A stretch of DNA of 64,000 bases, from positions 248,001 through 312,000 of the forward strand of contig JANHCV010000003.1 in NCBI GenBank assembly GCA_025594325.1, in the 5' to 3' direction. The notes beneath the pieces are model-generated. The model ran no database searches, was not told the origin of the DNA, and saw nothing but the letters and a program-made list of their open reading frames with translations. This stretch comes from Blastocladiella emersonii ATCC 22665 (taxonomy: Eukaryota; Fungi; Blastocladiomycota). This document shows positions 10,911 through 56,759 of the stretch, in pieces. Made by a program: the position numbers and the translations under genes. The stretch's first letter is position 1. Each line of letters begins with the position of its first letter.

Positions 10911-11623
10911 GGCGGGCCGGTGAGTGTGTGTGGACAGGCAGGGACGATGGCGATCAGCGACGGCAACGTTGCGACGAGCGGAGCCCGGACGGATCTCCGA
11001 TAAGCTGCCTCCTTATATAGCAGCGCCCCCGGTCCTCGCCACGCGGCGCGCCGCTGCGTGTCCGTGGCCATCGGGCCGGCACGGCGCGCGGGTGTGGGTG
11101 TGCGCGACTCGGGTGTCCGCAGACGTCTCCCGCGTGCGAGTGCGTCTCCGTGAGGTGTCCTCTCCCCCTGAACGGGAGAATTCGGCGCGAGACAGGAAGA
11201 AACACGACCACGCACACCCGTTCTTGTTCACCGCACACCCGCCCATGCTTGGCACGCGTGGGAATTGGCAGGGCGAGGGCTAGGGTCGTGGGAATCGTGT
11301 CCTCACGGCGCCCGTCGCCCTGCTTGCGGTTGGCCGCGAGCACGCACGCACCGCTCCCGCCCGCGGGAGACGCTCGCTCGCTCGCTCGCGTCCTCGCACT
11401 CAAGGGAGAGACGCAGCAGCTCCCGCTTCCGCGCTTGGCACGAGCGCGCGAGAGCATGAGGGACGCGTTTTCGTGCACCGTTCGCGTGAGGTTGGGTGCC
11501 GGTTGCTCGCGCCGCGCCCATCCGAGTCGCGCGGTGATCACTGCTCTGATCGGGACGCGGACACGCAGACGCAGACATGAGCTAGCTATGCAGTAGATTT
11601 CATTTTCACCCCACCGGCACTCC

Positions 11624-12880
11624 TCAATGATGATCCGCAACGTGCAGCTTGACGCTGGCCGCCGCCCCAAAGAACTTGGCGAACAGCGCCTTGTAGACGA
11701 ACAGCGACGTGCCCATCACTGTCAGCTTGGCCCGCACCGCCGCGTGGTCGCGCATGATCTCGCTGCTCTCCACCTTGGTAATCGCCGTCCGCCCAAACGC
11801 GTGGTTGACGATCACCAGGTACGGCTCGGCGCCGTCTTCCGCGCCCACGACGCGCACCAGGCCCTTGACGCGGTACACCGTGTCCTTGCTCAGCTTGCCC
11901 AAAAACTCGTCCCACGCCGCGAGCGGGACCGCGTTGGTGCCGTCGAAGCTGTCGTCCTCGATCGTCAGCAGGTCCACCTCGTTCTTCATGTGGTCGATCC
12001 CGCCGTGCGCGTCGTCGGCCTGCCCGCCGACTTTGATCTCGCCGAGCCGCGACCCGGTGGGCAGCGTCGAAAACAGCTGCGTGTCGAGTCCGAACAGCAG
12101 GTCGAGGTCCAGGTCCGACGCGTACTTGACCTTGGGCGTGTCCTCGTTGAGCTCGTACACGTGGTCCAGGACCAGGTCCAGCTCGCGCTCCGTCACCAGC
12201 TCGTGCTTGTTGAGCAGAATCAGGTCCGTGTATTGCGCCTGCATCTTGGCCGTGTACGACGTGTCTGCGCGGTCTCAGTCAGCCGTCGTGGCACGGACAG
12301 GAGAACGCATGCACACACGCACCCTCGTAGCCGCGGAAGTTGACCGCGTCAATCACCGTGACGATCGAGTCGAGGTGAAAGTCGGGCTCGATCTGCCGGA
12401 TCTGCCACGCGATGGGCGCCGGGAACGCGCTGCCGCTGCTCTCGATGATGATGCGGTCCGGGTTGTACGCCTCTACACCGTGTACAGACGTCAGCCCGGT
12501 CCGGCTGAAGTGGCCGCGATAGCGCGCCGTACCCTTGATCTCCTGCAGCGCATTCTTCATCTGGCCCACGAGCACGCAGCACAGGCACCCGTTGAGCATC
12601 TCGGTCACCTTAATCGAGCTCTCGCTTGCCAGCAGCGAGTCCACCTTGACGTCGCCAAACTCGTTCTTGAGCAGCGCCACCTTGTAGCCCGGCACCGCCT
12701 GGCCGAGCCGCTTGATCAGGTCGAAGATGATGGTCGTCTTGCCCGCGCCTACCGCATGGTGGGGGCGTCAGCCGGCGGGTGTGCGAGCGGGGCGAAGAGT
12801 GCTGCCCTACCGAGGTAGCCCGTGAACACGGTGACCTGGATCCCGGTCTGGGCCTTGCTCGCAGATGCGGTTTCTTCCAT
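11624..12880 (-). CDS. COG0523/CobW (G3E family) P-loop GTPase, putative Zn metallochaperone, multi-exon
   Basis: Spliced Walker A VTVFTGYLG|AGKTT, NEFG, EMLNGCLCC (CxCC metal motif), IIIESSG, and TDLILLNKHEL; C-terminal YRVKG CobW_C-like motif. Confidence 0.9.
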
Positions 12881-18596: not shown

Positions 18597-20101
18597 CTAG
18601 GGCAGCGAGAGCGTCAGCGGGTCGGCCAGCTGCGCGGCGAGCTCGGGCGATGTGCACAGCAGCGCCATCACGTCCTACACGCCGGGCGAGTCGACGTGAG
18701 CGAGGCGGACCGAGGCGATGGACGAGTCGTCGTACCTGCTTGCACAGCGGGCACACGCGCGCGAGCTGGAGCCAGTGGAGCAGGCACCCGGAGCAAAAGT
18801 GGTGCTTGCACGGCAGCCGCAGGACCTGCTGCCCCGCGGCGTACTCGTCGAGGCACACGACGCAGAACGCGTCGTCCGGGTCGAGCCGCAGCACACCTTC
18901 GTCGTCGGGATCGGGGTCGGGGACCGGAACGGCCACGGCTGTCGTGAACGAGTCGAGCGAGGCCGCGTCATCGTCGCTGGCCGCGGCTGCGGTGTCGGTG
19001 ATGCGCGGCACGTACACGAGCGTCGGGATCAGCTCGAGCGCCGCCGGCTTGACACCGCGCGCGCGCGTCGCCGAGGCCGCCGCCGCCGCCGCCGAGGCCG
19101 CCGCCGCCGCCGCCGCGGCAAACTCCTGGGTGCGGAACTCCTCCATGGCGCGCAGCAGATCGTCGGCCGTGACGCCCACGTACCCGTCCTGCTGCTGCGC
19201 GTGCTGATACTGCTGCATGGGCGCGAGGCGCGACTGCAGGCTCGTGGACCGGATGTGCTTGAGCAGCCACGGCAGGAAGGTGAAGGCGAAGGCGTTAAGG
19301 ACCACGGGCGTCGTGAGGTGCACGTAGTATAGCCCGACCCACAGCCACAGGCTGCCGACGAGGATCGGGTTTGGGCAGGTCGGGGCGAAGAAGAGCCAGT
19401 AGTGCGCGTTGATGAAGAGGAACGGCGCGGCGAAGTTGGCGGTTGCGCGGAGGCTATGGAGCGGTGGTTAGCGTCGTGGTCGTGGGCGAGCCGAGTTGAC
19501 GACGTACCTTGCCGCAAGCGACCGCGCAGGCACCCTCGTCTCAGCCGCGACTGCCGCCGCCGACGCCGCCGACGCGCTCGTGCGCGTCCTCGCCAACCGA
19601 TTCCTGCGCGCCTGGTGGATCGCGACGGGGTACGCAAAGATGGTGACGAGCGTGACGGCGAGCACGAACGCCTGGTGGATGACGAGCGGGCGGCAGTTAG
19701 GCGCCGGGCTCGGGTCCAGGATCCCCCACAAGGCGAGGCCGGCGTGCACCGCGTCGGTGAAGACGTGCGCGAACAGGTACCACGGCGACGCGTGCAGCTT
19801 GCGCAGCCAGTGCGTCACGATCGCCACGGACATGGTGCGGCGCGCGGACCGGGCTTCGGCGCGGGCGACTGTGGAGGGTGGGCGAGGTGAGATGGAGGTG
19901 ATGGGGACGGTGTTGGAGGGTAGAGAGCATACACAGGACGCGAGGGGTCCGGAGCGATGCTGAACGGCTCAGCATGACGGGTTCAAGTGGTGCTTCTGTT
20001 GGAGCAGGTGGAGTAGCAGTACCGGCTCCAAGGTCGACGCCGCCGCCGTCCGCGGGCTCGCGCAGAGGGATCCATGAGCCGTCGTCGCGTCGGTTGTCCA
20101 T
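18597..20101 (-). CDS. Transmembrane RING-H2 E3 ubiquitin ligase, multi-exon
   Basis: CVVCLDEYAAGQQVLRLPCKHHFCSGCLLHWLQLARVCPLCKQ (C3H2C3); several hydrophobic segments upstream; ATG at 20101 (MDNRRDD); last exon DVMALLC...LSLP*. Confidence 0.8.
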
Positions 20102-20385
20102 GGCCGGGATCGTGCTTACATGCAAGGGTTCAATTCATGGCAGGGAGAGAGCGAGGACGGCGGGCGAGGCCCTGCCTCTATCAAGTGCGTCAACCCATGG
20201 AGGAAAAGGGAAGGGAGGGGCCCCTCGGCGGCGCAGCTGGCACCACTTGAGAGGGTGAGGGCACCTTCCCTCCCTGGCAGCCGCGCCGATCGACGCGCGC
20301 GACGCGTTCCGCTCGCGTGACCGCGGACCGAGCCTGAAACCGCCGGCTCCGCTCGCGCGCGGTCCCCGCTCCCGACCCGTAAACC

Positions 20386-21250
20386 ATGGCGTCGCGCAGG
20401 AAAAAAGTACCGCATGCACCGACTCCATGCAATGTAACCCATGAATGGCCCCCGCTCACGCACCCCACCCGCCGTGCCCCGCCGCGGCTAGGGCGTGCAA
20501 CTGATCCTGCCCATCGTCTACGGCAACGAGGCGAGCAAGCTGCCCGACGGCGCGCCCGAGATGGAGCAGGGCCACACGCACCGCTGGCGCATCTACGTGT
20601 GCGGGCCCAACGGCGAGGACGTGTCGTACTTTGTCAAGAAGGTCGTCATCCGCCTGCACGAGAGTTTTGTGAATGCCGCGCGCGGTACGTCGCTCCTGTG
20701 TTCTCGCTGTACTGCGCCCTCCGTCTCACCGTATCCCGTAAACAGTCCTCGAGCAGCCGCCCTTCGAGGTCATCGAGACCGGGTGGGGCGAGTTCGAGAC
20801 CCTCATCTCCATCCACCTGCACGACTTCTCCGAGAAGCCCGTCAAGATGGCCCACATGCTGCGCCTGTTCCCGCCCGAGGGCGAGCCGCCCGTCCCCGCC
20901 GACCCGGCGCGCCCCGGCATGCTCGTCACTGAGCGCTTCGACGAGATCATCGTCAACGAGCCCACCGAGGCCTTTTACGAGACCGTCGTCAACAACCTCG
21001 GCCGGTCGTACCCGCTCGCCGGGCCCGTGTGGAGTACGCTTTTTCGCTGCGTTGCGCGATGTTGTCGGTACTCACCCGAGAGCGTGTAGATCGCACCACC
21101 GAGGCCGATGAGATCGCACGCCTGCAGTCCGCCATCGACACGGTCCAGGGCCAGATCAAGGCGTACCAGGACCGCATACAGCAGCGCGACGCCGAGCTCG
21201 CCGCCATGAAGCGCGAGTCGGCCATGGGTCTCGACGGCGGACACCGCTAG
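20386..21250 (+). CDS. YAF9: YEATS-domain protein Yaf9/GAS41, multi-exon
   Basis: PIVYGNEA, HTHRWRIYV, DVSYFVKKVVIRLHESF, PPFEVIETGWGEF, ERFDEIIVNEP and a C-terminal coiled coil. Confidence 0.88.
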
Positions 21251-23833: not shown

Positions 23834-24033
23834 CGGAACTCTGTACATTTCTTGCGATTGCCTCGCCCTATATAAAGATCTTAGCTGCCAACCCAACCGC
23901 GTTTCCGTGACTTGCGTGTCCCAAGTGTTCCGTGTCTCAGTAGAGCGCCAGCTTGAGCGCTGTCTCGAGTGAGACGCGTCGCCCCGCCGAGCTTTCCCAC
24001 TCCGACCGCTCACGACCCGCTCATGTAAAACGA

Positions 24034-27014
24034 ATGGAGACGCACTTCAACCCCATGCAATACGCCCAGCAGCCCTTCGGCTACCACTCGCTTGGCGATC
24101 CGCCGTGGAATCCGGGTCCCGGCCAGCTGCACCCGCCGCCGTGGCCCGCTGGAGCCGTTCCCACCGCAGCCCCTGAGGCGCCGCACCTTGCTGCGCCGAC
24201 TGCTTTACCGAACGGGGATGCTGCCCCGAACCTAGATCTCTTGCTTTTTGCTCAACAACGCCTCGTCGTGCCCGCTCTCACTGCTTCAGGCGACCCGGAT
24301 CCCGCCGCCTGGCTGCGCGTCCTCGAAGCTGATCTCACCACGCTTGGCCTGCCGCGCCGCTTCTGGCACCTCGCCGCGCTTCATTATGCCAAACCGGATC
24401 TCGCGGGTGCCCTGCGGATGCGCTCCCAGGAGCGCGTCGATGCAGCTGGTATTCCCGGCGGCGATGTTTGGACGCTTGGACTTTGCCCGGTAGTTCTCGA
24501 GCTGCAACCTCCCGTAGTGCTGGCTCAGCCGGTTTACGATGCCCGATACGACATTCCTGCTCGAGTTGACACTTGGCCTCAGCAACAAGCTGCCGCGGAA
24601 CGCTTGCCCGACTTTATGATTGGAGCGTTTGGGACCTGGCCGCTCGTGCAGCCGCTTCAGCAGCCTCGGTCTCCGCCGCGGCCCCAATCTACGCGCATGG
24701 ACACGTCGGCAGCTTTTACGACTCCCGTTGATCCTATGCAAGCTCCAGCAATCGCCAATCTCACGACCGACGCGGACTTGGTTCACGAATGCGTGCCGGT
24801 CGAGGAATCGACTGAAACCGCCGAACCGATCGACCTTTCGCACGACGACTTAACCGACAAGTCCTCTCAGTTCACGCAGTCCGACGGCGAAACTGACGAC
24901 ATTTTCGAGCTCGAGTCCGCGCTTCCTGCTTCCCCTGTTCTTGCCGATGTCGCGACGACTTCCATTTCGTCACCGCCGAGCCCGGCCGCCGACCTTCCCG
25001 GTGCGGCTGCTGTTGATGTTGACGACGCTTCTCCTCACGCCTCGCAATCACGCCCAGTTTCGCCTTCGCTGTCCGACGAACATGTTGATCACGACGACGG
25101 AATCGAACCCTCCCCATCTTTAAAGGACCCGTCTTCGGCGTCGGACGACGGCTGCGAATCGCTTGCACCGGAATCTGTTCAGCTCGACGCGTCTGTTTCT
25201 TCGCCGAAGCTCGACACGACTGCTTTGCCAATGCTCGACGTGCAGCTCGCCAACCCGATTCTGGTCAGCGACGGTACGCGATACATGGCCCACGAGCGTA
25301 CCCGCTCCCTGATCTGACTTGCTCTCACGGTGTAGACGGTTCCGCGCAGCGCGAGATCATTGAAGCGATCGAGGACGGCACCCCCGCGGAGGTCGACCAC
25401 GCGAGCGGTATGCCTTCCCGCGAGCTGGACTCCAGCGAGCTTGCCGAAATCGCTGCCGCTCCTTCCGATGCGACTTGCAGCGACAGCGCGGCGGCCGACT
25501 TGGACAGCGACAAGGCGATCTGGCTCTCAACGTTCCCATCGTTGCTTGAAGCGCCGCTCACACTTTCGCCCATGTCTTCTCCAACCACCAGCGATTTCGA
25601 GCTCGAGTCGGATTCCGAGAACGAGCCAGACTTCAACGACGAAACCAAGATCCCGTGGCTTCACTGCATTCCCGCGCCGTGTGGAACAACTGTTGGGCGG
25701 GTTCGATTCGAGACCGAAGTCCGGTCGCTTCCGATCCGCGATCCCGCTGTGCCCATGGTTTGCGTCGATATCGTCTGGTCTGACTTGATCAGCGCTCACT
25801 ATGCTGGTCCTGGCGTGTGGGACTTTGACGCGGACCTGGTCCCGTGCCATATCCGACTTTGGGTCTACCCGGAAACCAAGTGGTCCGCGGTTCGGTACTG
25901 CATCCTGCAGATGGAGGTCACCAAGAATCTTTTAGGTCGGTCGCGTACTTCTCCTGTTTTCTGGCGCTTGACAAACGGCTGCTCTGGGATCGACGCGCGA
26001 CCTGCGGCCAACGGACTGTTGCTTGAGGGTGACGCCACGGTCGAGCGGCTTCTTGCCGCGAGCAATACCAGTGTTGCACCAAAGAAAAAGCTGACGCGAG
26101 GTAAGAAACGCGCGCCGCCGCAGCCGACTGCAGCAATGCGTGACGCGGCGAGTCCTCGCATTTTGCGCGTTCTTGCGATCTCAAAGGCGACCAAAATGGA
26201 CGGCGCCCCTCTCATCAGTGCCAAGCTTTCAAACGCGCCTCTCGCCGATTCGTTTCTCAAGGAACAGCTCTCCGTCCGTCACATGCTTGTCTTTGTCAAA
26301 GTGTATGGCGATCATACTGCCCTGCACTACATTCGCGCGAGCTGGGTTTCCTCGTCTGACGTGATTGGTGACGTGGTTCCCGCTGCGCTCCGCTTCGCCA
26401 AACTTCCGCACGTCAAGGAGCTTTTCGCGTCGCCCACGGCCATCTACGAAGAGCGGCTTGGGTCTGCGCCGCCACGCAAACTCCACCCTCGTTCCACTTG
26501 GCGCGATCTTGGCGTCACTTCGGGTGCTGTCGTTGTTCTCGAATACGTTGGCACCGTGTTCAGAAATCTCATTCAAGCTCAGCTCCAGCGAGCCAACTCT
26601 GACGACGAGTTTACCTCATGGCTCAGTCCGTCGTTGCGCTACCAATTTCTGTTCCTCTTCCCCCTCTTGTGGGACCTCTGTCCGTCCAACCTCCAAATGG
26701 TTATTCACCTCGCGCTCAGCGGGCTTTGGATCTCCGCTTCGCTGGCCCTCGACGCACCCCCTATTTCGCGCCGCCATTTGGACATGCGGCGGGAGTACTG
26801 TCTGATCGTTTACCGCCAAGTTGCGCCGCACGCGTACGCGGAGTGGGCCCGCTGGTGGACCTCGGGCGAGTGGGACCACGATTTCGCGTGGCTCTGCCAC
26901 CCTGGCGCGCCTGAGTTCACGACTCGTGGGTTGGACCAGGTGGATCCTCGACTTGTAGAGGGCGGAGATCTCACGAGCGGAGCGAAGAGTCTCCGCGAAG
27001 ACGGCTTGCAGTGA
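24034..27014 (+). CDS. Chimeric protein, copy 1: Gag-like N-terminus, acidic linker, USP7/Ubp15 UBL1-2-like domains (intron 25274-25335)
   Basis: ORFs 23953-25317 and 25410-27014 splice in frame via GTACGC...CTGAC...TGTAG (62 nt, phase 1). Motifs MVCVDIVWSDLISAHYAG..VWDFD, HMLVFVKVY, IYEER and LHPRSTWRDLGVTSGAVVVLEY resemble the USP7 C-terminal UBL1-2. A paralog lies at 53433-56545. Confidence 0.7.
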
Positions 27015-49633: not shown

Positions 49634-50902
49634 TCACGTCCCGCGCGTCGCCTTGGCCTTGAGGCGGCGGTCGAGCATCTCGGTGAGCGTGTTGGCGATG
49701 GAGAAGTGGGTCTGCTGGCACCGGTACATGGAGTTTTCGAGGTGGTACTGTGTGACCATGAACGCCTCGAACCACGTCAGGTTGCACGCGAGGTGGGTCA
49801 TGGGCACCACCTCGTCGTGGCGCAGCGTGCCCGCGAGCGACTCGAGGATCTTCTGCATGTTCTGGTTGCTCGACAGGTCGGTGCGGGCCAGCAGCTCGCG
49901 CATGTCGTTGCGCTGCTTGTCGCGGAACGCCTCCTTCTTCTCGCGCTGCGCGTCGAGCCGGATCCGCAGCTGGTTGGCCCGGTCCGCCTCGCTCGCCTCC
50001 TCGATGTTCTCGCAGATGACGCCGATGAACATGTTGGTGAAGATGAAGTTGCTGATCACCATGAACAGGATCGAGTACAGCTCCGACCCCGCGTACCCCT
50101 TGGCCGTCAGGTTCGTCTGCACCGACACCCACCCGGAGCTCGTGATGTAGTACATGAGGCTGAGCAGCGACGCGCCCAGCGTCCCAAAGTCGTCGGCGTC
50201 GGCCTTGTTGTCGGACCCGAACAGGTAGTACCCCATGACGGCGAAGATGAACGTGAAGGCGAACAGGACCGCGACAATGTCGAGCACCGACTTGCGCAGC
50301 GTCAGGAGCAGCGCGTTGACGATGATCTGCAGCCGGCGGACCGACGAAATGGACCGGAATGACCGCAGCGCGCGCAGCGACCGGAACACGCGCAGGAACG
50401 TCAGGTTGCCGAGCGACGCGCCCAGCAGCGAGATGACAAACTGCGCAATCGAAATGGCCAGGATCATGAAATCGAACTTGTTGTACCCGGACCGCCAGTA
50501 CCCGCGCGGCTCGACAAAGATTTTCAGCACAAACTCGACCGTGTAGATGCCGAGGAACAGCAGGTCCGTGTACTGCGAGAACAGCGTCTGGTCGTCCGGT
50601 AACGACGTGTCGATCCCGATCGTGACGCAGTTGGCGAAAATCGTCAGCAGCATCAGCCGCGAGAACAGCGACGAGTTGACGATCCGCGAAACGAACACGC
50701 GCTGACGGTGTAGCTCCTCGGACTGGATCCGCGCGCGCTCTTCGGCCAGCAGCGCGAGCGCGTCCGGCGCGTCGGGCGCGACTTCGTCTGTTCGGTCCGT
50801 CGGTAGACCGTTCGCCGCAAACTCCTGCAGCAGCCGAACGCCCCGCGTCGACGCCTTGTTGATGCCCCACCCGCCAAACGCGACCGAGTTGCCGTTGACC
50901 AT
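49634..50902 (-). CDS. CatSper-like single-domain 6TM voltage-gated cation channel, intronless
   Basis: S1-S3 LMLLTIFANCVTIG / IYTVEFVLKIFV / YWRSGYNKFDF; S4 FLRVFRSLRALRSFRSIS; pore FGTLGASLLSLMYYITSSGW; S6 NFIFTNMFIGVICENIEE; C-terminal coiled coil. Confidence 0.85.
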   Translation of the reverse strand: MVNGNSVAFGGWGINKASTRGVRLLQEFAANGLPTDRTDEVAPDAPDALALLAEERARIQSEELHRQRVFVSRIVNSSLFSRLMLLTIFANCVTIGIDTSLPDDQTLFSQYTDLLFLGIYTVEFVLKIFVEPRGYWRSGYNKFDFMILAISIAQFVISLLGASLGNLTFLRVFRSLRALRSFRSISSVRRLQIIVNALLLTLRKSVLDIVAVLFAFTFIFAVMGYYLFGSDNKADADDFGTLGASLLSLMYYITSSGWVSVQTNLTAKGYAGSELYSILFMVISNFIFTNMFIGVICENIEEASEADRANQLRIRLDAQREKKEAFRDKQRNDMRELLARTDLSSNQNMQKILESLAGTLRHDEVVPMTHLACNLTWFEAFMVTQYHLENSMYRCQQTHFSIANTLTEMLDRRLKAKATRGT

Positions 50903-51214: not shown

Positions 51215-51436
51215 TCAGGCAGCCTTGCTGTTGGCCCTACGGATAGATTGGGAAACACCGAGGGCTGACCTAAATGCTATAGTAAGCCTCCCATTCGGCA
51301 CATGACAGCACTGTAGACGCATTCCACTCAGGGGCAGCACGCAGACGCATTCGACGTGCGCGGCGTCCGCTATACAAGCTTCGCTCAGTTCTATTCTCCC
51401 CCAATCGGCTCCCCTCACCAGCAAGACTTCAATCAT
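51215..51436 (-). pseudogene. Possible ankyrin-like gene remnant
   Basis: Only MIEVLLVRGADW resembles an ankyrin repeat end; short ORF in a lower-GC segment. Confidence 0.2.
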
Positions 51437-51499
51437 TCAATTCAATAAATTCAATAAAATCAACTCAACGAATGCCTTACAATCAAACAACAAAAATTG

Positions 51500-51740
51500 G
51501 AGGGTAAGTGCACCGGCCGAAAATGCGGCCGAACGAGGGTCACCCGGCCCAGCAGGGCAAGGGCACCTCGCAGCTAGGCTCGGTTGCTACTATTCGAGCC
51601 ACCGCCCCGCCGCTGACTCCTAAGCACAGCGCGTGCTCGTGGTCTTGGCAAGGGAAGCACGGACGTGCGGACACGATGCGTGTCACACGCTCCAACCCAG
51701 CTGGTGGATGGTGAGGGAAGGAGGGTAAGGACGGCTTGCA
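51500..51740 (-). ncRNA. Candidate Fanzor omegaRNA scaffold / element right end
   Basis: Lies immediately 3' of the Fanzor stop codon, where TnpB/Fanzor omegaRNAs are encoded. At least five stems: 51678-51690, 51623-51637, 51577-51600 (GGCTCG/CGAGCC), 51533-51571 and 51514-51531 (CGGCCG/CGGCCG). Ends at an abrupt switch to AT-rich sequence below ~51500. Confidence 0.5.
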
Positions 51741-53168
51741 CTACTCGACCGTGGGCGTGGTGCGGCGCTTGCGGTGGTAGCGGTGCTTGGGGCGGGCGGC
51801 GGGCAGCGGGTTGCCGTCCGCGTCCTTGGCCTGGTCCTCGAAGACGAGCTGCTTGATGGCGAACGAGAGGATGTTGACGGCCGCGTTGCGGTCGCGCTGC
51901 ACGCGGACGCCGCAGCGACGGCACGCGCGCGTCTGGTACACCTTCTTGTTGGTCTTGCCGAGCAGGTTGGTCTTGTCGGCCTTGGCGGCGGCGGGGTCGG
52001 CCATGGCGCACGCGGCGCACCACTTGCTCGAGAAGTTCTCGTTGACGGCGTACACGGTGACGCCGCGCGAGCGCAGCTCCTTGACCATCTCGACCACGGG
52101 GCCCTTGTCAGCCGCCGAGATCACGCCGAAGCCCGAGAAGTTGCGGCCAATGAGCACGACGTGGCCGCGCAGCGCGCGGGCGAGGTCGGCCCAGTACGCC
52201 TTGCGGCGGCCCTCGTTGGTGAACTTGGTGCTGCACACGCCGTGGCTGCAGCTCTCCTCGATCTTGGGCTCCATGTACTCGGTGGCGACCCGAGCGACCG
52301 CGCGGTGGTCGCCGGCAACGCACGAATGCGCTGCATCGCCTGGTACGAGGCCCGCCTCGGCGCGCGACGCCTTGCGCTGCTCGCGGGCCTGGTCGGTGCC
52401 GACGTGGTGGTGGAACTCGTCACTCGACAGCGACCGGAACAGCGGCCGGGTCAGGACGACGCGCGAGACCGCCGACCGAATGTACGCCTTGAGCACCTCG
52501 GACCACGGGCCGTCGCCACCCCGCGCCGCCAAGTACGCAAGGTACTGGAGCCGCCGGAACAGGCGCGCGAGCTCGAACGGCACGACGAAGCCGGTGAGAA
52601 AGCCGCGCACGCCGGCGTCAATGACAAACATGCGCTGGCCGTAGCGGACGACGATCTTCTTCTTGTGCGACTCGATCTTGTCGCGACCGCCGGGGATCGG
52701 AACCTGGACCGAGCCATGGGGCGCGAGCTTGTCGGCCTCAGCGAGCACCTGGTTGAGCATGAGGCCGCCCGCGCCGTCGACCGAGACGCCTGCAAACGGC
52801 TTGTCGAACTTGTCCGTGGAGCGACGCCCTTGACGCCCGCCCGTCGTGGTGGTGGTGGTGGTGGCCTTGGTCCCGGCCTTCTTCTTGCCGGCAGCCTTCT
52901 TGACCGTGTTGCCGCCGGCGCCCTCCTCGTCGTCCTCCTCGTTACCGCCGTCGCCGACCGTGTCCGCCCTGGGCCGGATGCCGCCCTTGTACAGGTACAC
53001 GCGAACGACATGGCCGTCGGTCGAGATGCGGCCCTGGAACTGGTTGATGAGCGAGCCGCCGGGCCCGTCACGCCGCAGGATGCGCGGGTCGACGAAGCCG
53101 TTGTACAGGTCGAGCAGCGCCGTCCAGTGGGCGAGGTCGGAGCGGGCGCGCTCGAGGTCGGACGAGCA
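51741..53168 (-). mobile_element. Fanzor1-type (eukaryotic TnpB-derived) RNA-guided RuvC nuclease, apparently 5'-truncated
   Basis: 475 stop-free codons. FQGRISTDGHVVRV (Fanzor1-like TDG motif); RuvC-I FVIDAG (D at 52617-52619); VVLIG..., KGP, then relocated RuvC-II VNENFSSKWC (E at 52038-52040); CAAC...CRRC Zn finger; RuvC-III QRDRNAAVNIL (D at 51891-51893); basic C-terminus RPKHRYHRKRR. Confidence 0.88.
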
Positions 53169-53432: not shown

Positions 53433-56400
53433 TCAGCTCTCATCATCCTTGACCTCTGAGAGTCGAGAATCAACCTCGTCCAACCCGCGCGTGGTGAAAA
53501 CAGGCGCAACCGGATGGCAAAACCACGAAAAGTCGCGGTTCCACTTGCCGTTGGTCCAGCACCGCGTCCAATCAGCAAACGTGAACGGCGCATTTCGTCC
53601 GCTCATGACCACTTGGTACCCGTAGCGGAAATCGAGCTCCCGGCGCGAGATCGGTGCAGAGTCATGGTACAGGACAGCGGATATCCAGAAATCGGCCATG
53701 ACCTTGCTGAAAAGCGGATGCAAAGCCGGTGGACAGAGTTCCGCCATGGGCGAGATGAGGAGAACGAGTTGAGTACACAGCGGCGGGCTAAACCAAGACA
53801 TGTGCGGCCCGTCATGATTGATTCGTGCCAGTTGCTCCTGGACAAGGGTTCCAAACGGAACGCCCATGTACTCAAGGACAATGACGGCACCAAAAGAGAC
53901 GCCAAGCTCGCGCCAAGTGGATCGAGCGTGAAGCTTACGCGGCGGCCCCAAGCCTGGTCGCTCTTCATAGATAGCCGTTGGAGAAGAAAAGAGCTCCTTA
54001 GCGTGAGGAAACTTGGAGAACCGAAGAGCTGCAGCAATCACATCGCCGATCACGTCAGAAGGGGCAACCCAGCTCGCACGGATGTAGTGCAGGCCAGTAT
54101 GGCCCGCGTACACCTTGACAAAAACAAGCATGTGGCGGGAAGCGAGGAGGTCCACAAGGGCTGCATCTGACCGTGAGGCTGCGGCCCCAAGAAGAGAAGT
54201 GCCGTCCATCATGGTGGGCTGCGAGATCGCGAGAACGCGCAGGACGCGATTGTTGGCTGCGTCGCGCGTTGCAGCCGTCAGCTGCGGCGCGCGTTTCTTG
54301 CCTCGCTGCGGCTTTTTCTTTGTCTCGAGTTTGAAGCTGCTAGCCGTAAGAAGCTGTTGAACCGTGGCATCGCCGTCAAGCAAGAGTCCATCCGTCACAG
54401 GCCGCGCATCGGTTCCAGCACAGTCGCTGGTCAATTGCCAAAAGAGCGGCGAGGCGGAAAATTGACCCAAAATCTTTTTCGTGAGCTCCATTTGCATGAG
54501 GCAGTATCGGACAGTGGACCATTTGGTTTCCGGGTAGACCCAAAGCCGAATGTGGCACGGCACCAAGTCCGAGTCAAAGTCCCACACGCCAGCACCGGCG
54601 TAGTGCGCGCTGATCAGGTCGGACCAGACCACGTCGACGCACACCATAGAAGTGGGAAGATCGCGGACAAGAAGCGACCGGACCTCGGTCTCGAATCGCG
54701 CGCGTCCACCGGTCGTCCCGCACGGAGCAGAGATGCGGTGCAGCGCTGGAATTCCACGTTTGGTGAAGGCGTCTGGCTCGTCTGGCAACCCGGCCTCCAG
54801 GTCTGCCTCAAAGTCGCTGGTGGTTGGAGAATGCGGCGGTGCGCGAGGGAGTGGCTCTTTGAGCAATGCTGGGAATGTCAAGCGCCAGATCGCCTCGTCA
54901 TCGTCCAAGTCTGAAGTCGTGTCGGAGCTGAAAGCTGCAACAGAAGAAGGAACAGAAGTGTCGATGAGATCGCAGGAAGTCAGCTCGAAAGAAGGCGTGA
55001 CGTCAGAAGGCTCCATTTCCGCGGAGACACTAAAGTCTACGATTAAGCCAATGTCATCGTGCTGCTCAGAGCCACCTACACCGTTGAGGCGAGTCAGATC
55101 TGCATGTAAGTGCGCTTTTGGGCAGTATATCGCGTACCTTCGTCGACCGTGATCGCGTCGTCAACCTGCGCGTCAAGCGTCGACAAGGCAAGCGCGTCAA
55201 GCGTCGACAAAGTAGGCGCATCGAGCGCTGACAAAGCAGGCGCATCGAGCGCTGACAAACCAGGCGCATCGAGCGCTGACAAACCAGGCGCGACGAGCGC
55301 TGGCAAAGCAGGCGCGACGAGCGCTGGCGAAGCAGTCGCGACGAGCGCTGGCGAAGCAGTCGCGACGAGCGCTGGCGAAGCAGTCGCGACGAGCGCTGGC
55401 GAAGCAGTCGCGTCAAGCGGCTCGCAGGCGTCGCCTCGCGCCAGAGCCTCGCCCTCAAGCGGTGAGTTGGGCTCAGTGTCTTCGAATTCAACATCTTCGG
55501 CAAGTAACGCAGGCGAGATTCGGCAAGTTTCCAACTCGCGAGAGGAAGGTTCGTCGGCATCAACAGCAGCCACGCTATCGTTGGCTAGAGGAATGTCCGC
55601 GGATGGGCTCGACGGTGACGAAATGGTGGGTGCAGCGGAATCGACCGGGCTTGATGAAGCAGAATGTACGGATTCAAAATCAGAAGTAGTGTCTTGATCG
55701 TCATCCGACTCGCATGGCCCGTCAGACTCTGACTGTGAAAATTGCGAAGCCTCGTCAACAAGATCGACGTGTTCCGCAAGCTCGGCCGAGTCATTGGTCA
55801 GCACGATCTCGCGAGTTGCGTCAGCGACCGCATTTAGCGTGGGAATGACGAGGGTCGGAGATTGCATGGGAGTCGCGACTGGTGGGTCCGTCCAAGCAGG
55901 CTGCGGTTGCGGCGGAGGCTGCGACGACTGATGCGGCTGCATGAACGGCCAAGTCCCGAAAGCTCCGGTCAAAAAGTCGGGCAAGTGGTCGGTCGCAGCA
56001 TGCTGGGGCCAATCCTTCGCTTGGGCAGAATTGTCGTATCGGGCATCGTAAACCGGCGGAGCCGGCACTACGGGAGGTTGCAGCTCGAGAACTACCGGGC
56101 AAAGTCCAAGCGTCCAACTATCGCCGCCGGGAATACCAGCTACATCGACGCGTTCCTGGGCGCGCATGCGCAGAGTACCCGCGAGCTCCGGCTTGGCATA
56201 GTGAAGCGCGGCGAGGTGCCAGAAGCGGCGCGGCAAGCCAAGCGTGGTGAAATCGGCCTCGAGGACGCGAAGCCAGGCGGCGGGATCCGGGTCCCCGGAA
56301 GCGCTGAGAGCGGGAACGACGAGTCGTTGCTGAGCAAAATGCAAGAGATCGAGGTTCAGAGCTGCATCGTCGACCGAGAAGGTGGCAGGCATGGCGTGAT

Positions 56401-56545
56401 GCGTAGCGTCAGGGGCAGCGGCGGGAACTGTTCCAGAAGGCCAGGGTGGCGGGTGCGGCAGATCCGCATCCCACGGCGGAGCGCCAAACGGACCATAGCC
56501 ATGGTCCTGCTGAGCATAATTCATGGGGTTGAAGTGCGTCTCCAT
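53433..56545 (-). CDS. Chimeric protein, copy 2: Gag-like N-terminus, acidic linker, USP7/Ubp15 UBL1-2-like domains (one intron at ~55076-55137)
   Basis: ORFs 55094-56545 and 53433-55016 are collinear paralogs of 24034-27014 (METHFNPM.YAQQ, DPDPAAWLRVLEAD.TTLGLPRRFWHLAALHYAKP, HMLVFVKVY) and have the same GTACGC...CTGAC...TGTAG intron at the same position. Confidence 0.7.
55185..55410 (-). repeat. 24-bp coding minisatellite (ATASPALV x~4, then PxLSALDA x~5)
   Basis: Repeated agcgctggcgaagcagtcgcgacg and gcatcgagcgctgacaaa units; absent from the paralog at 24034-27014. Confidence 0.85.
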
Positions 56546-56759
56546 TCGTTTTACATGAGCGGGCGAGGAGGGTTCGGAGGCCCGCTAGCGCTGCTTGTTT
56601 TGCCGCGGCGTTTCTCAGCCACAGCAGCCGCCAGTCACATGGCCGCAATCGACGCATCCATCCACGCGTCGCGTTCCGCGCTTTCGCAGGCCGGCCACCC
56701 CGCAACCCTCGCACATCGATTCTTCAATGCAGCTATAACCTATTGCATCGGCCACAACC

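Follow-up and report, generated by a model that had tools for sequence, protein, structure and literature searches.

A probable 5'-truncated Fanzor1-type remnant in Blastocladiella emersonii, one of a set of dispersed copies with a common 3' terminus

Does the open frame of 475 sense codons plus stop at 51741..53168 on the minus strand of a 64,000-nucleotide stretch of DNA (the window, by which the whole stretch is meant) encode a working RNA-guided nuclease of the Fanzor1 type, or is it what remains of one? Fanzors are eukaryotic RNA-guided nucleases of interest for genome editing, and since early-diverging fungi often carry Fanzor1, the blastocladiomycete Allomyces among them (PMC3627910), the presence of one in Blastocladiella emersonii ATCC 22665, the source of the window, was to be expected. 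A first-pass annotation made from the letters of the sequence had described the frame, which H9P43_002944 contains unchanged as its C-terminal part, as an RNA-guided nuclease with an intact catalytic triad. Our analysis very probably answers the question in favour of a relic: a Fanzor1-type remnant which retains the RuvC/TNB core and a 3' tail, which has lost everything upstream of position 53165, and whose copies were probably made by a process anchored at the 3' end.

The frame is a member of the TnpB/Fanzor superfamily. Translation reproduced the 475 codons with all of the motifs previously listed for them, and Pfam assigned the product to PF07282 (Cas12f1-like TNB) with 38.5 bits and an E-value of 1.3e-9, the gathering cut-off being 26.3 bits. 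The defining motif of TnpB and Fanzor proteins given by Bao and Jurka, D-X(125,275)-[TS]-[TS]-X-X-[C4 zinc finger]-X(5,50)-RD (PMC3627910), is present exactly, as D184, 195 residues, S380-S381, K382-W383, C384/C387/C416/C419, five residues and R425-D426. On the minus strand, RuvC-I is represented by FVIDAG (residues 181-186; codon of D184 at 52617..52619), the canonical position of the RuvC-II Glu by the Gly of VVLIG (residues 337-341; codon of G341 at 52146..52148), the relocated RuvC-II Glu by E377 of VNENFSSKWC (residues 375-384; codon at 52038..52040), the C4 zinc finger of the TNB domain by the CxxC pairs 384-387 and 416-419 (51912..52019), and RuvC-III by QRDRNAAVNIL (residues 424-434), of which D426 in RDRNAA is encoded at 51891..51893. 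As read from the translation, this set of motifs is far beyond chance. In an alignment of 17 family members, reaching down to 22% identity with the window frame, E377, C384, C416, C419, D426 and N428 are invariant and G341 is nearly so, the RuvC-I Asp is kept in all but one of the members covering that position, and PF07282 scores above its cut-off in 17 of 17 with no other Pfam family in any of them; even at E-values up to 10 the full-length members gave nothing besides TNB.

That the frame is incomplete became evident when ten copies of the element (that of the window together with L001-L006 and L016-L018) were compared by blastn, a sample which favours copies retaining the C-terminus and is a lower bound for the genome. 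At least ten copies are dispersed in the genome, with 93-96% pairwise identity among the seven compared with each other, and the close paralogues of the frame are 86-94% identical to it. Every one of the ten has kept its 3' end, which lies approximately 270 nucleotides past the stop codon (...GTTTGATTGTAAATATGCAT), and nine of them, the window copy included, are truncated at nine distinct 5' breakpoints, located in L001 coordinates at 11082, 11279 (the window), 11323, 11400, 11505, 11597, 11676, 11748 and 12201. The 5' breakpoint of the window copy is at 53163..53168 (minus strand), homology to the longer copies stopping abruptly at 53165, and the sequence upstream of this position is unrelated to every other copy. 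No start codon opens the frame, whose first codon comes directly after an upstream stop; in alignment with the full-length relative P0020, residue 4 of the frame pairs with residue 160 of that protein, and a P-x-L-x2-R-F motif kept upstream of the breakpoint in longer members is absent. Judged from these alignments, the window copy is without at least ~160 N-terminal residues, and the frame corresponds to roughly the C-terminal three quarters of a Fanzor1-type gene, covering part of WED/REC, RuvC and the TNB zinc finger. That the truncation arose by post-insertion deletion is unlikely, as the 3' end is retained throughout the ten copies.

Solved Fanzor1 complexes show the duplex of the target-adjacent motif (TAM) and the first guide nucleotides held by the N-terminal REC and WED domains, and residues R85, S123, H126 and Y130 of GtFz1, which lie in the N-terminal TAM/REC region, are needed for cleavage (PMC11423790). 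With the region carrying these TAM- and guide-binding parts missing, the product of the window copy should be unable to target DNA; by analogy with those complexes, guide loading and TAM recognition are most likely both beyond it, and the copy is probably a 5'-truncated relic, a dead-on-arrival insertion, and not an intact nuclease. Nor does the earlier suggestion of an orphan copy do it justice, as it is one of at least ten dispersed copies sharing one 3' terminus. Full-length relatives occur elsewhere in the genome (P0013 of 639 residues and P0020 of 572 residues), and among the copies examined none of the window subfamily is intact. Only L001 reaches further 5' than the nine breakpoints. 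Its annotated intron (11022-11101; contig JANHCV010000001.1, gene H9P43_000824, protein P0002) is an annotation artefact, being coding sequence that aligns with other subfamilies when read in a third frame and that implies two frameshifts, and L001 also lacks eight codons near RuvC-II; L001 being frameshifted and the other copies 5'-truncated, no examined member of the subfamily is intact. The gene model H9P43_002944 itself splices 82 residues of the upstream open reading frame (ORF) and two small exons onto the Fanzor frame, and we regard it as a chimera which is not to be taken as a real protein.

What the copies have in common is their 3' part. A non-coding tail of 264 nucleotides (51477..51740, minus strand), delimited by blastn of the copies and common to all of them, exists in two variants which differ just past the stop codon and converge on the last 98 nucleotides, a terminal module (51477..51574, minus strand) conserved between both variants. 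In this module two GC-rich stem-loops, the first of them three-tiered, lie 35-95 nucleotides from the terminus and are followed by a T-rich tail, TTTTTGTTGTTTGATTGTAA; the two lineages offer just 1-2 compensatory pairs, and folding gave z-scores of -1.9 (whole tail, as RNA) and -2.9 (terminal part, as DNA). No Rfam family matched the 3' tail, and a covariance model of the terminal module found matches in these copies only, with no solo ends and none in other subfamilies. The terminus itself, at 51470..51480 (minus strand), reads ...GATTGTAAATATGCAT in other copies and ...GATTGTAAGGCAT in the window, and beyond it the flank is unrelated AT-rich sequence. The tail is a candidate for an omega-RNA scaffold, for a right-end recognition sequence (a hairpin for a rolling-circle enzyme), or for both. 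From the solved Fanzor1 complexes it would be expected that in an intact family member an omega-RNA derived from the 3' tail is bound by the protein, and that DNA is then cut by the D184/E377/D426 site.

The AT-rich sequence past the terminus of the window copy (51381-51470) contains a 9-nucleotide tandem repeat at 51439-51463, and flanks of a microsatellite-like, AT-rich nature are found past the terminus in four of seven copies, including L001, L003 and L004. That these represent tails of the long interspersed nuclear element (LINE) type was rejected, as the repeat units differ and three copies are without them.

Copies that share one 3' terminus and have lost their 5' parts to different extents were probably made by a process which is anchored at the 3' end and often stops short of the 5' end. 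The closest precedent would be one-ended rolling-circle mobilisation of the Helitron2 type, acting in trans: the Helitron2-borne Fanzor1 elements CRe-1, 2 and 3 of Chlamydomonas are 'frequently 5'-truncated' with their 3' ends intact, which was ascribed to one-ended copying by a rolling circle that starts at the 3' end (PMC3627910, section 8). We found no terminal inverted repeats in the longest copy, L001, no target-site duplications in six copies (the longest flanking repeat measuring 4-5 nucleotides), no T-rich insertion target, the 5' flanks not being T-rich, and no defined 5' terminus in any of the copies examined. Since target-site duplications and T-rich targets of the Chlamydomonas type are absent, the parallel with Helitron2 is an analogy and not an assignment. 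The main alternative to rolling-circle spread is reverse transcription, in which a LINE-type enzyme would copy Fanzor transcripts starting at their 3' end, in the manner of processed pseudogenes. Nine unique 5' ends combined with one precise 3' end would fit such a route, the terminus holds TGTAAATA, which we read as resembling a polyadenylation signal, and Fanzor1c was placed near LINEs by Jiang et al. (PMC10530073); the copies, however, display no poly(A), no shared repeat tails and no target-site duplications. Splicing is unusable as a test of this route because the subfamily has no confirmed intron, that of L001 being coding sequence with two frameshifts. We consider an RNA intermediate unlikely, though less so than the other alternatives weighed below, and retain 3'-anchored copying of DNA as the favoured explanation. 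Copies that are 5'-truncated and 3'-intact had been described before only from the Helitron2-borne Fanzor1 of a green alga, and the pattern bears on how Fanzor elements move.

The assignment to Fanzor1 within the superfamily was approached from motifs and from predicted structure. As had been noted, the canonical RuvC-II position is taken by a Gly, and the Glu stands, relocated, just before the zinc finger (PMC10530073, PMC3627910). G500 and E536 of SPu-1-1p are extremely conserved in Fanzor1 (PMC3627910), and the 36 residues from G341 to E377 equal the spacing of that pair. Jiang et al. (PMC10530073) reported that the canonical Glu is replaced by Gly or Pro and that the later Glu is the catalytic one; the same arrangement occurs in Fanzor2 and in some TnpBs, so that the relocated Glu, although present as claimed, is not by itself the mark of Fanzor1 that it had been taken for. 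AlphaFold2, run on the family alignment, gave a model with a predicted local distance difference test score of ~80-90 over residues 165-445 and with residues 42-161 disordered. Foldseek against the PDB placed SpuFz1, the Fanzor1 of Spizellomyces punctatus, first (E-value 1.3e-6), and all 50 of the top 50 matches were Fanzor, TnpB or Cas12 proteins. VIA-align likewise ranked SpuFz1 first, with a Z-score of 12.8 over 219 residues at 3.7 A (model 164-443 on chain 362-623), followed by PpFz1 (Z 11.0), CasPhi (Z 10.1), ApmFz2 (Z 9.4) and ISDra2 TnpB (Z 9.3), and its five best matches were all Fanzor1 (SpuFz1 four times, and PpFz1). The structural comparison with TnpB, Fanzor and Cas12 that had been proposed as a check was thereby carried out, and, together with the TNB match, the alignment and a profile search of the PDB, it bears out a TnpB-derived, Fanzor1-like RuvC/zinc-finger nuclease sequence. 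In the AlphaFold DB clusters, the best matches were mostly uncharacterised or TNB-domain proteins.

Residues D383, E541 and D606 of SpuFz1 are the metal-binding and catalytic residues (PMC10432273, PMC11423790). From the offsets of the aligned ranges, which give no distances, D184 falls within one residue of D383 and D426 falls on D606. In the model D184 terminates the strand 180-184, G341 lies in the strand 337-342, E377 is positioned just past the next strand (371-376) and D426 starts the helix 425-440, a predicted layout matching a RuvC site whose Glu has shifted by one strand. The frame is best described as Fanzor1-like, an assignment made from motifs and structure ranking.

A different origin within the same superfamily was also weighed, namely that the frame derives from a separate eukaryotic acquisition, Fanzor2-like or an independent transfer of the TnpB2 type, which converged on the Gly/Glu arrangement. 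The relocated Glu, found also in Fanzor2 and TnpB2 (PMC10530073), is compatible with this, as is the fact that detectable sequence homology to known proteins is confined to the last ~70 residues: NCBIfam returned TnpB matches below threshold only (residues 368-434), and hhalign against four phage TnpBs reached 96.6% probability across the TNB and RuvC-III region, in the last 67 columns only and with the RuvC-I Asp not placed. The family profile gave weak matches to TnpB, Cas12f, TranC, SpuFz1 and ApmFz2 chains among PDB sequences, along with one repeat-protein match without a qualifying matched stretch, a profile of the segment from RuvC-I to the finger gave weak matches only, and a scan of viral contigs yielded ordinary phage TnpBs alone, 23-34% identical over the C-terminus. 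With the longest paralogue as query, HMMER was run exhaustively against 1.84 billion cluster representatives and produced 16 matches and no relative outside the B. emersonii genome. Against convergence stand the ranking by VIA-align, in which ApmFz2 and TnpB score lower than Fanzor1, the size of the full-length members, which at 570-790 residues is typical of Fanzor1 (PMC11423790), the spacing from Gly to Glu identical to that of SPu-1-1p and, as a lead only, the language-model features of P0020, which match at 0.97 TNB-bearing clusters of 600-800 residues from giant viruses and eukaryotes. A separate acquisition appears improbable, and membership of Fanzor1 remains the preferred assignment.

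Several observations weigh against the reading of the window copy as a Fanzor1-type relic with 3'-anchored siblings. The frame is still open, with pairwise dN/dS (the ratio of nonsynonymous to synonymous substitution rates) among copies of 0.3-0.65; the insertion features of Chlamydomonas Helitron2, a T-rich target and target-site duplications on truncated copies, are absent; the label Fanzor1 comes from motifs and structure ranking and not from a tree against Fanzor1, Fanzor2 and TnpB references; template-modelling scores reach only ~0.3, one third of the model being disordered; the arrangement of the D/E/D site was judged from alignment ranges and secondary structure; and the model of full-length P0020 is unusable for residues 1-279. 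As the N-terminal lobe is not modelled well even in that protein, the loss of WED/REC parts from the window copy is deduced from position. In this DNA of 64% GC long open frames arise by chance, one of 561 codons being present on the opposite strand, and the window copy differs from the family consensus by 2.4%, similar to its siblings. The dN/dS values fit a divergence partly built up in an active master lineage and do not show selection on the window copy itself. It is most improbable that the frame was exapted by being spliced to upstream exons, as in H9P43_002944, to give a RuvC/TNB-only protein with a host function, such as that of a DNA-binding factor or of a nuclease working without a guide. 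In favour of exaptation are the annotated junction of the frame with two short exons and 82 residues of the upstream ORF, the absence of a stop from the 475 codons, the retention of D184, E377, D426 and all four Cys, and a dN/dS below 1 among copies; against it, most other truncated copies are equally open, each in a different genomic setting, frames of this length occur by chance, the window copy has diverged no differently from its neighbours and the H9P43_002944 model may be purely ab initio.

Upstream of the RuvC core the frame contains ISTDG (residues 48-52; 53013..53027, minus strand), which belongs to an N-x-F-x-G-x3-T-D-G-x3-R motif kept in most subfamilies; by its position it is presumably a WED/REC strand, the model predicting strands 46-50 and 55-59 there at low confidence. 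It is followed by a low-complexity stretch rich in G/E/D/K/T (residues 67-116; 52821..52970, minus strand), which is predicted to be disordered and whose Lys-rich part could be a nuclear localisation signal. Of the insertions that had been called unusual, the low-complexity loop is indeed peculiar to the subfamily, as an expansion of a linker that varies in all subfamilies, while the ~55-residue insert after RuvC-I is not: its predicted helices are common to all subfamilies, and from the RuvC-I Asp to the Glu the frame counts 35 residues more than SpuFz1.

The immediate surroundings of the remnant consist of an ion-transport channel and two ORFs without Pfam matches; no transposase lies within ~4 kilobases of the frame, as had been stated before, and the gene tables of twelve related loci contain no transposase domain. 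Directly downstream, an ORF of 422 residues (49634-50902, minus strand) matches Pfam Ion_trans (E-value 2e-42) and, weakly, PKD_channel, and on this basis would encode a cation channel of the single-repeat, voltage-gated type. On the upstream side of the remnant, the two ORFs (527 and 483 residues; 53453-56579) have an inverted paralogous copy 27 kilobases away at 24000-26961, with 66-81% nucleotide identity, and the ORF of 483 residues contains a minisatellite of 24/48/72 nucleotides (55168-55419; ~10 copies of 24 nucleotides) which encodes repeated ALVATASP-like units. Because this paralogy ends at 53453, 288 nucleotides before the Fanzor junction, it does not supply an empty-site paralogue.

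Within B. emersonii the frame belongs to a diverse and very divergent family. The matches from the HMMER search fall into approximately ten subfamilies with 22-46% identity, every family match for which the source was looked up came from this species, and a word-indexed protein search with the single query, the family profile and P0020 likewise returned proteins of the same genome only; one of the 16 matches, the repeat protein P0022, looks spurious. In P0025 (H9P43_004178) the RuvC-I Asp is replaced by Leu, with the relocated Glu and the RuvC-III Asp kept, and this protein may, from its sequence, be a naturally inactivated variant. Locus L005 carries two Fanzor subfamilies at 11051-12411 (plus strand) and 19090-20631 (minus strand), ~7 kilobases apart on opposite strands and with ~70% nucleotide identity in the core; the second (P0014, 505 residues) retains the D/E/D residues with Ser at the Gly position. 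Some gene models join the Fanzor core to other parts, P0027 (H9P43_001163) to alpha/beta-hydrolase Pfam domains and P0018 (H9P43_003300) to a long Cys-rich and Pro-rich N-terminus, both being either fusions or annotation artefacts.

A broader proposal is that Blastocladiella harbours a private and deeply diversified Fanzor1-like radiation, comprising about ten subfamilies for which sequence reveals no relative elsewhere, and whose members stand alone between host genes and spread by a 3'-anchored, 5'-truncating route without an adjacent transposase. We regard this as doubtful at present; if true, the radiation would represent either an undescribed fungal Helitron2-Fanzor partnership or RNA-mediated spread of an RNA-guided nuclease gene. 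The full-length members (e.g. H9P43_004874 and H9P43_006016) constitute a small untapped pool for nuclease mining.

Set beside known systems, the frame has the RuvC and TNB fold in common with ISDra2 TnpB (PDB 8H1J, 8EXA) and Cas12f, at Z-scores of 8-9.3. Canonical TnpB differs in that the Glu is kept in RuvC-II and, in the alignment to Cas12f, a Pro stands at the position of E377, and also in being a prokaryotic protein of ~400 residues paired with TnpA. The mimivirus Fanzor2 ApmFz2 (PDB 9B0L) shares the relocated Glu and the RuvC/TNB fold (Z 9.4), but its structural score is below those of the Fanzor1 structures, and Fanzor2 proteins are smaller and are found in an IS607-type context. The best structural match, SpuFz1 (PDB 8GKH, 9CEU-9CEZ), agrees with the frame in the RuvC-I Asp, the Gly at the canonical Glu site, a Glu 36 residues further on, the C4 TNB finger and the RD motif; both are hosted by early-diverging fungi and both families have many partial genomic copies (PMC10432273). 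Identity between the two is only 14-17%, and HMMER with the family profile sees only the C-terminal part of SpuFz1 (E-value 0.021). In the frame the segment from RuvC-I to the Glu is extended, as described above, insertions in the RuvC domain of a Fanzor1 having a precedent in the FRI domain of PpFz1 (PMC11423790), and the finger region has 16 residues fewer; unlike SpuFz1, the window copy has no N-terminal lobe, and the conserved inverted repeats at both ends of SpuFz1 loci were not found for the B. emersonii copies. The Chlamydomonas reinhardtii elements CRe-1, CRe-2 and CRe-3, which are Helitron2s of the non-autonomous kind (Bao and Jurka 2013, PMC3627910), differ in that their genes have 5-10 exons, unlike the B. 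emersonii copies, and in that their truncated copies carry target-site duplications of 7-19 base pairs after T-rich tetranucleotides, neither of which is seen in the copies examined here. In organisation, on the other hand, they resemble the family described here, as single-gene Fanzor1 elements without a transposase of their own whose copies are often 5'-truncated, with intact 3' termini and a subterminal 3' hairpin.

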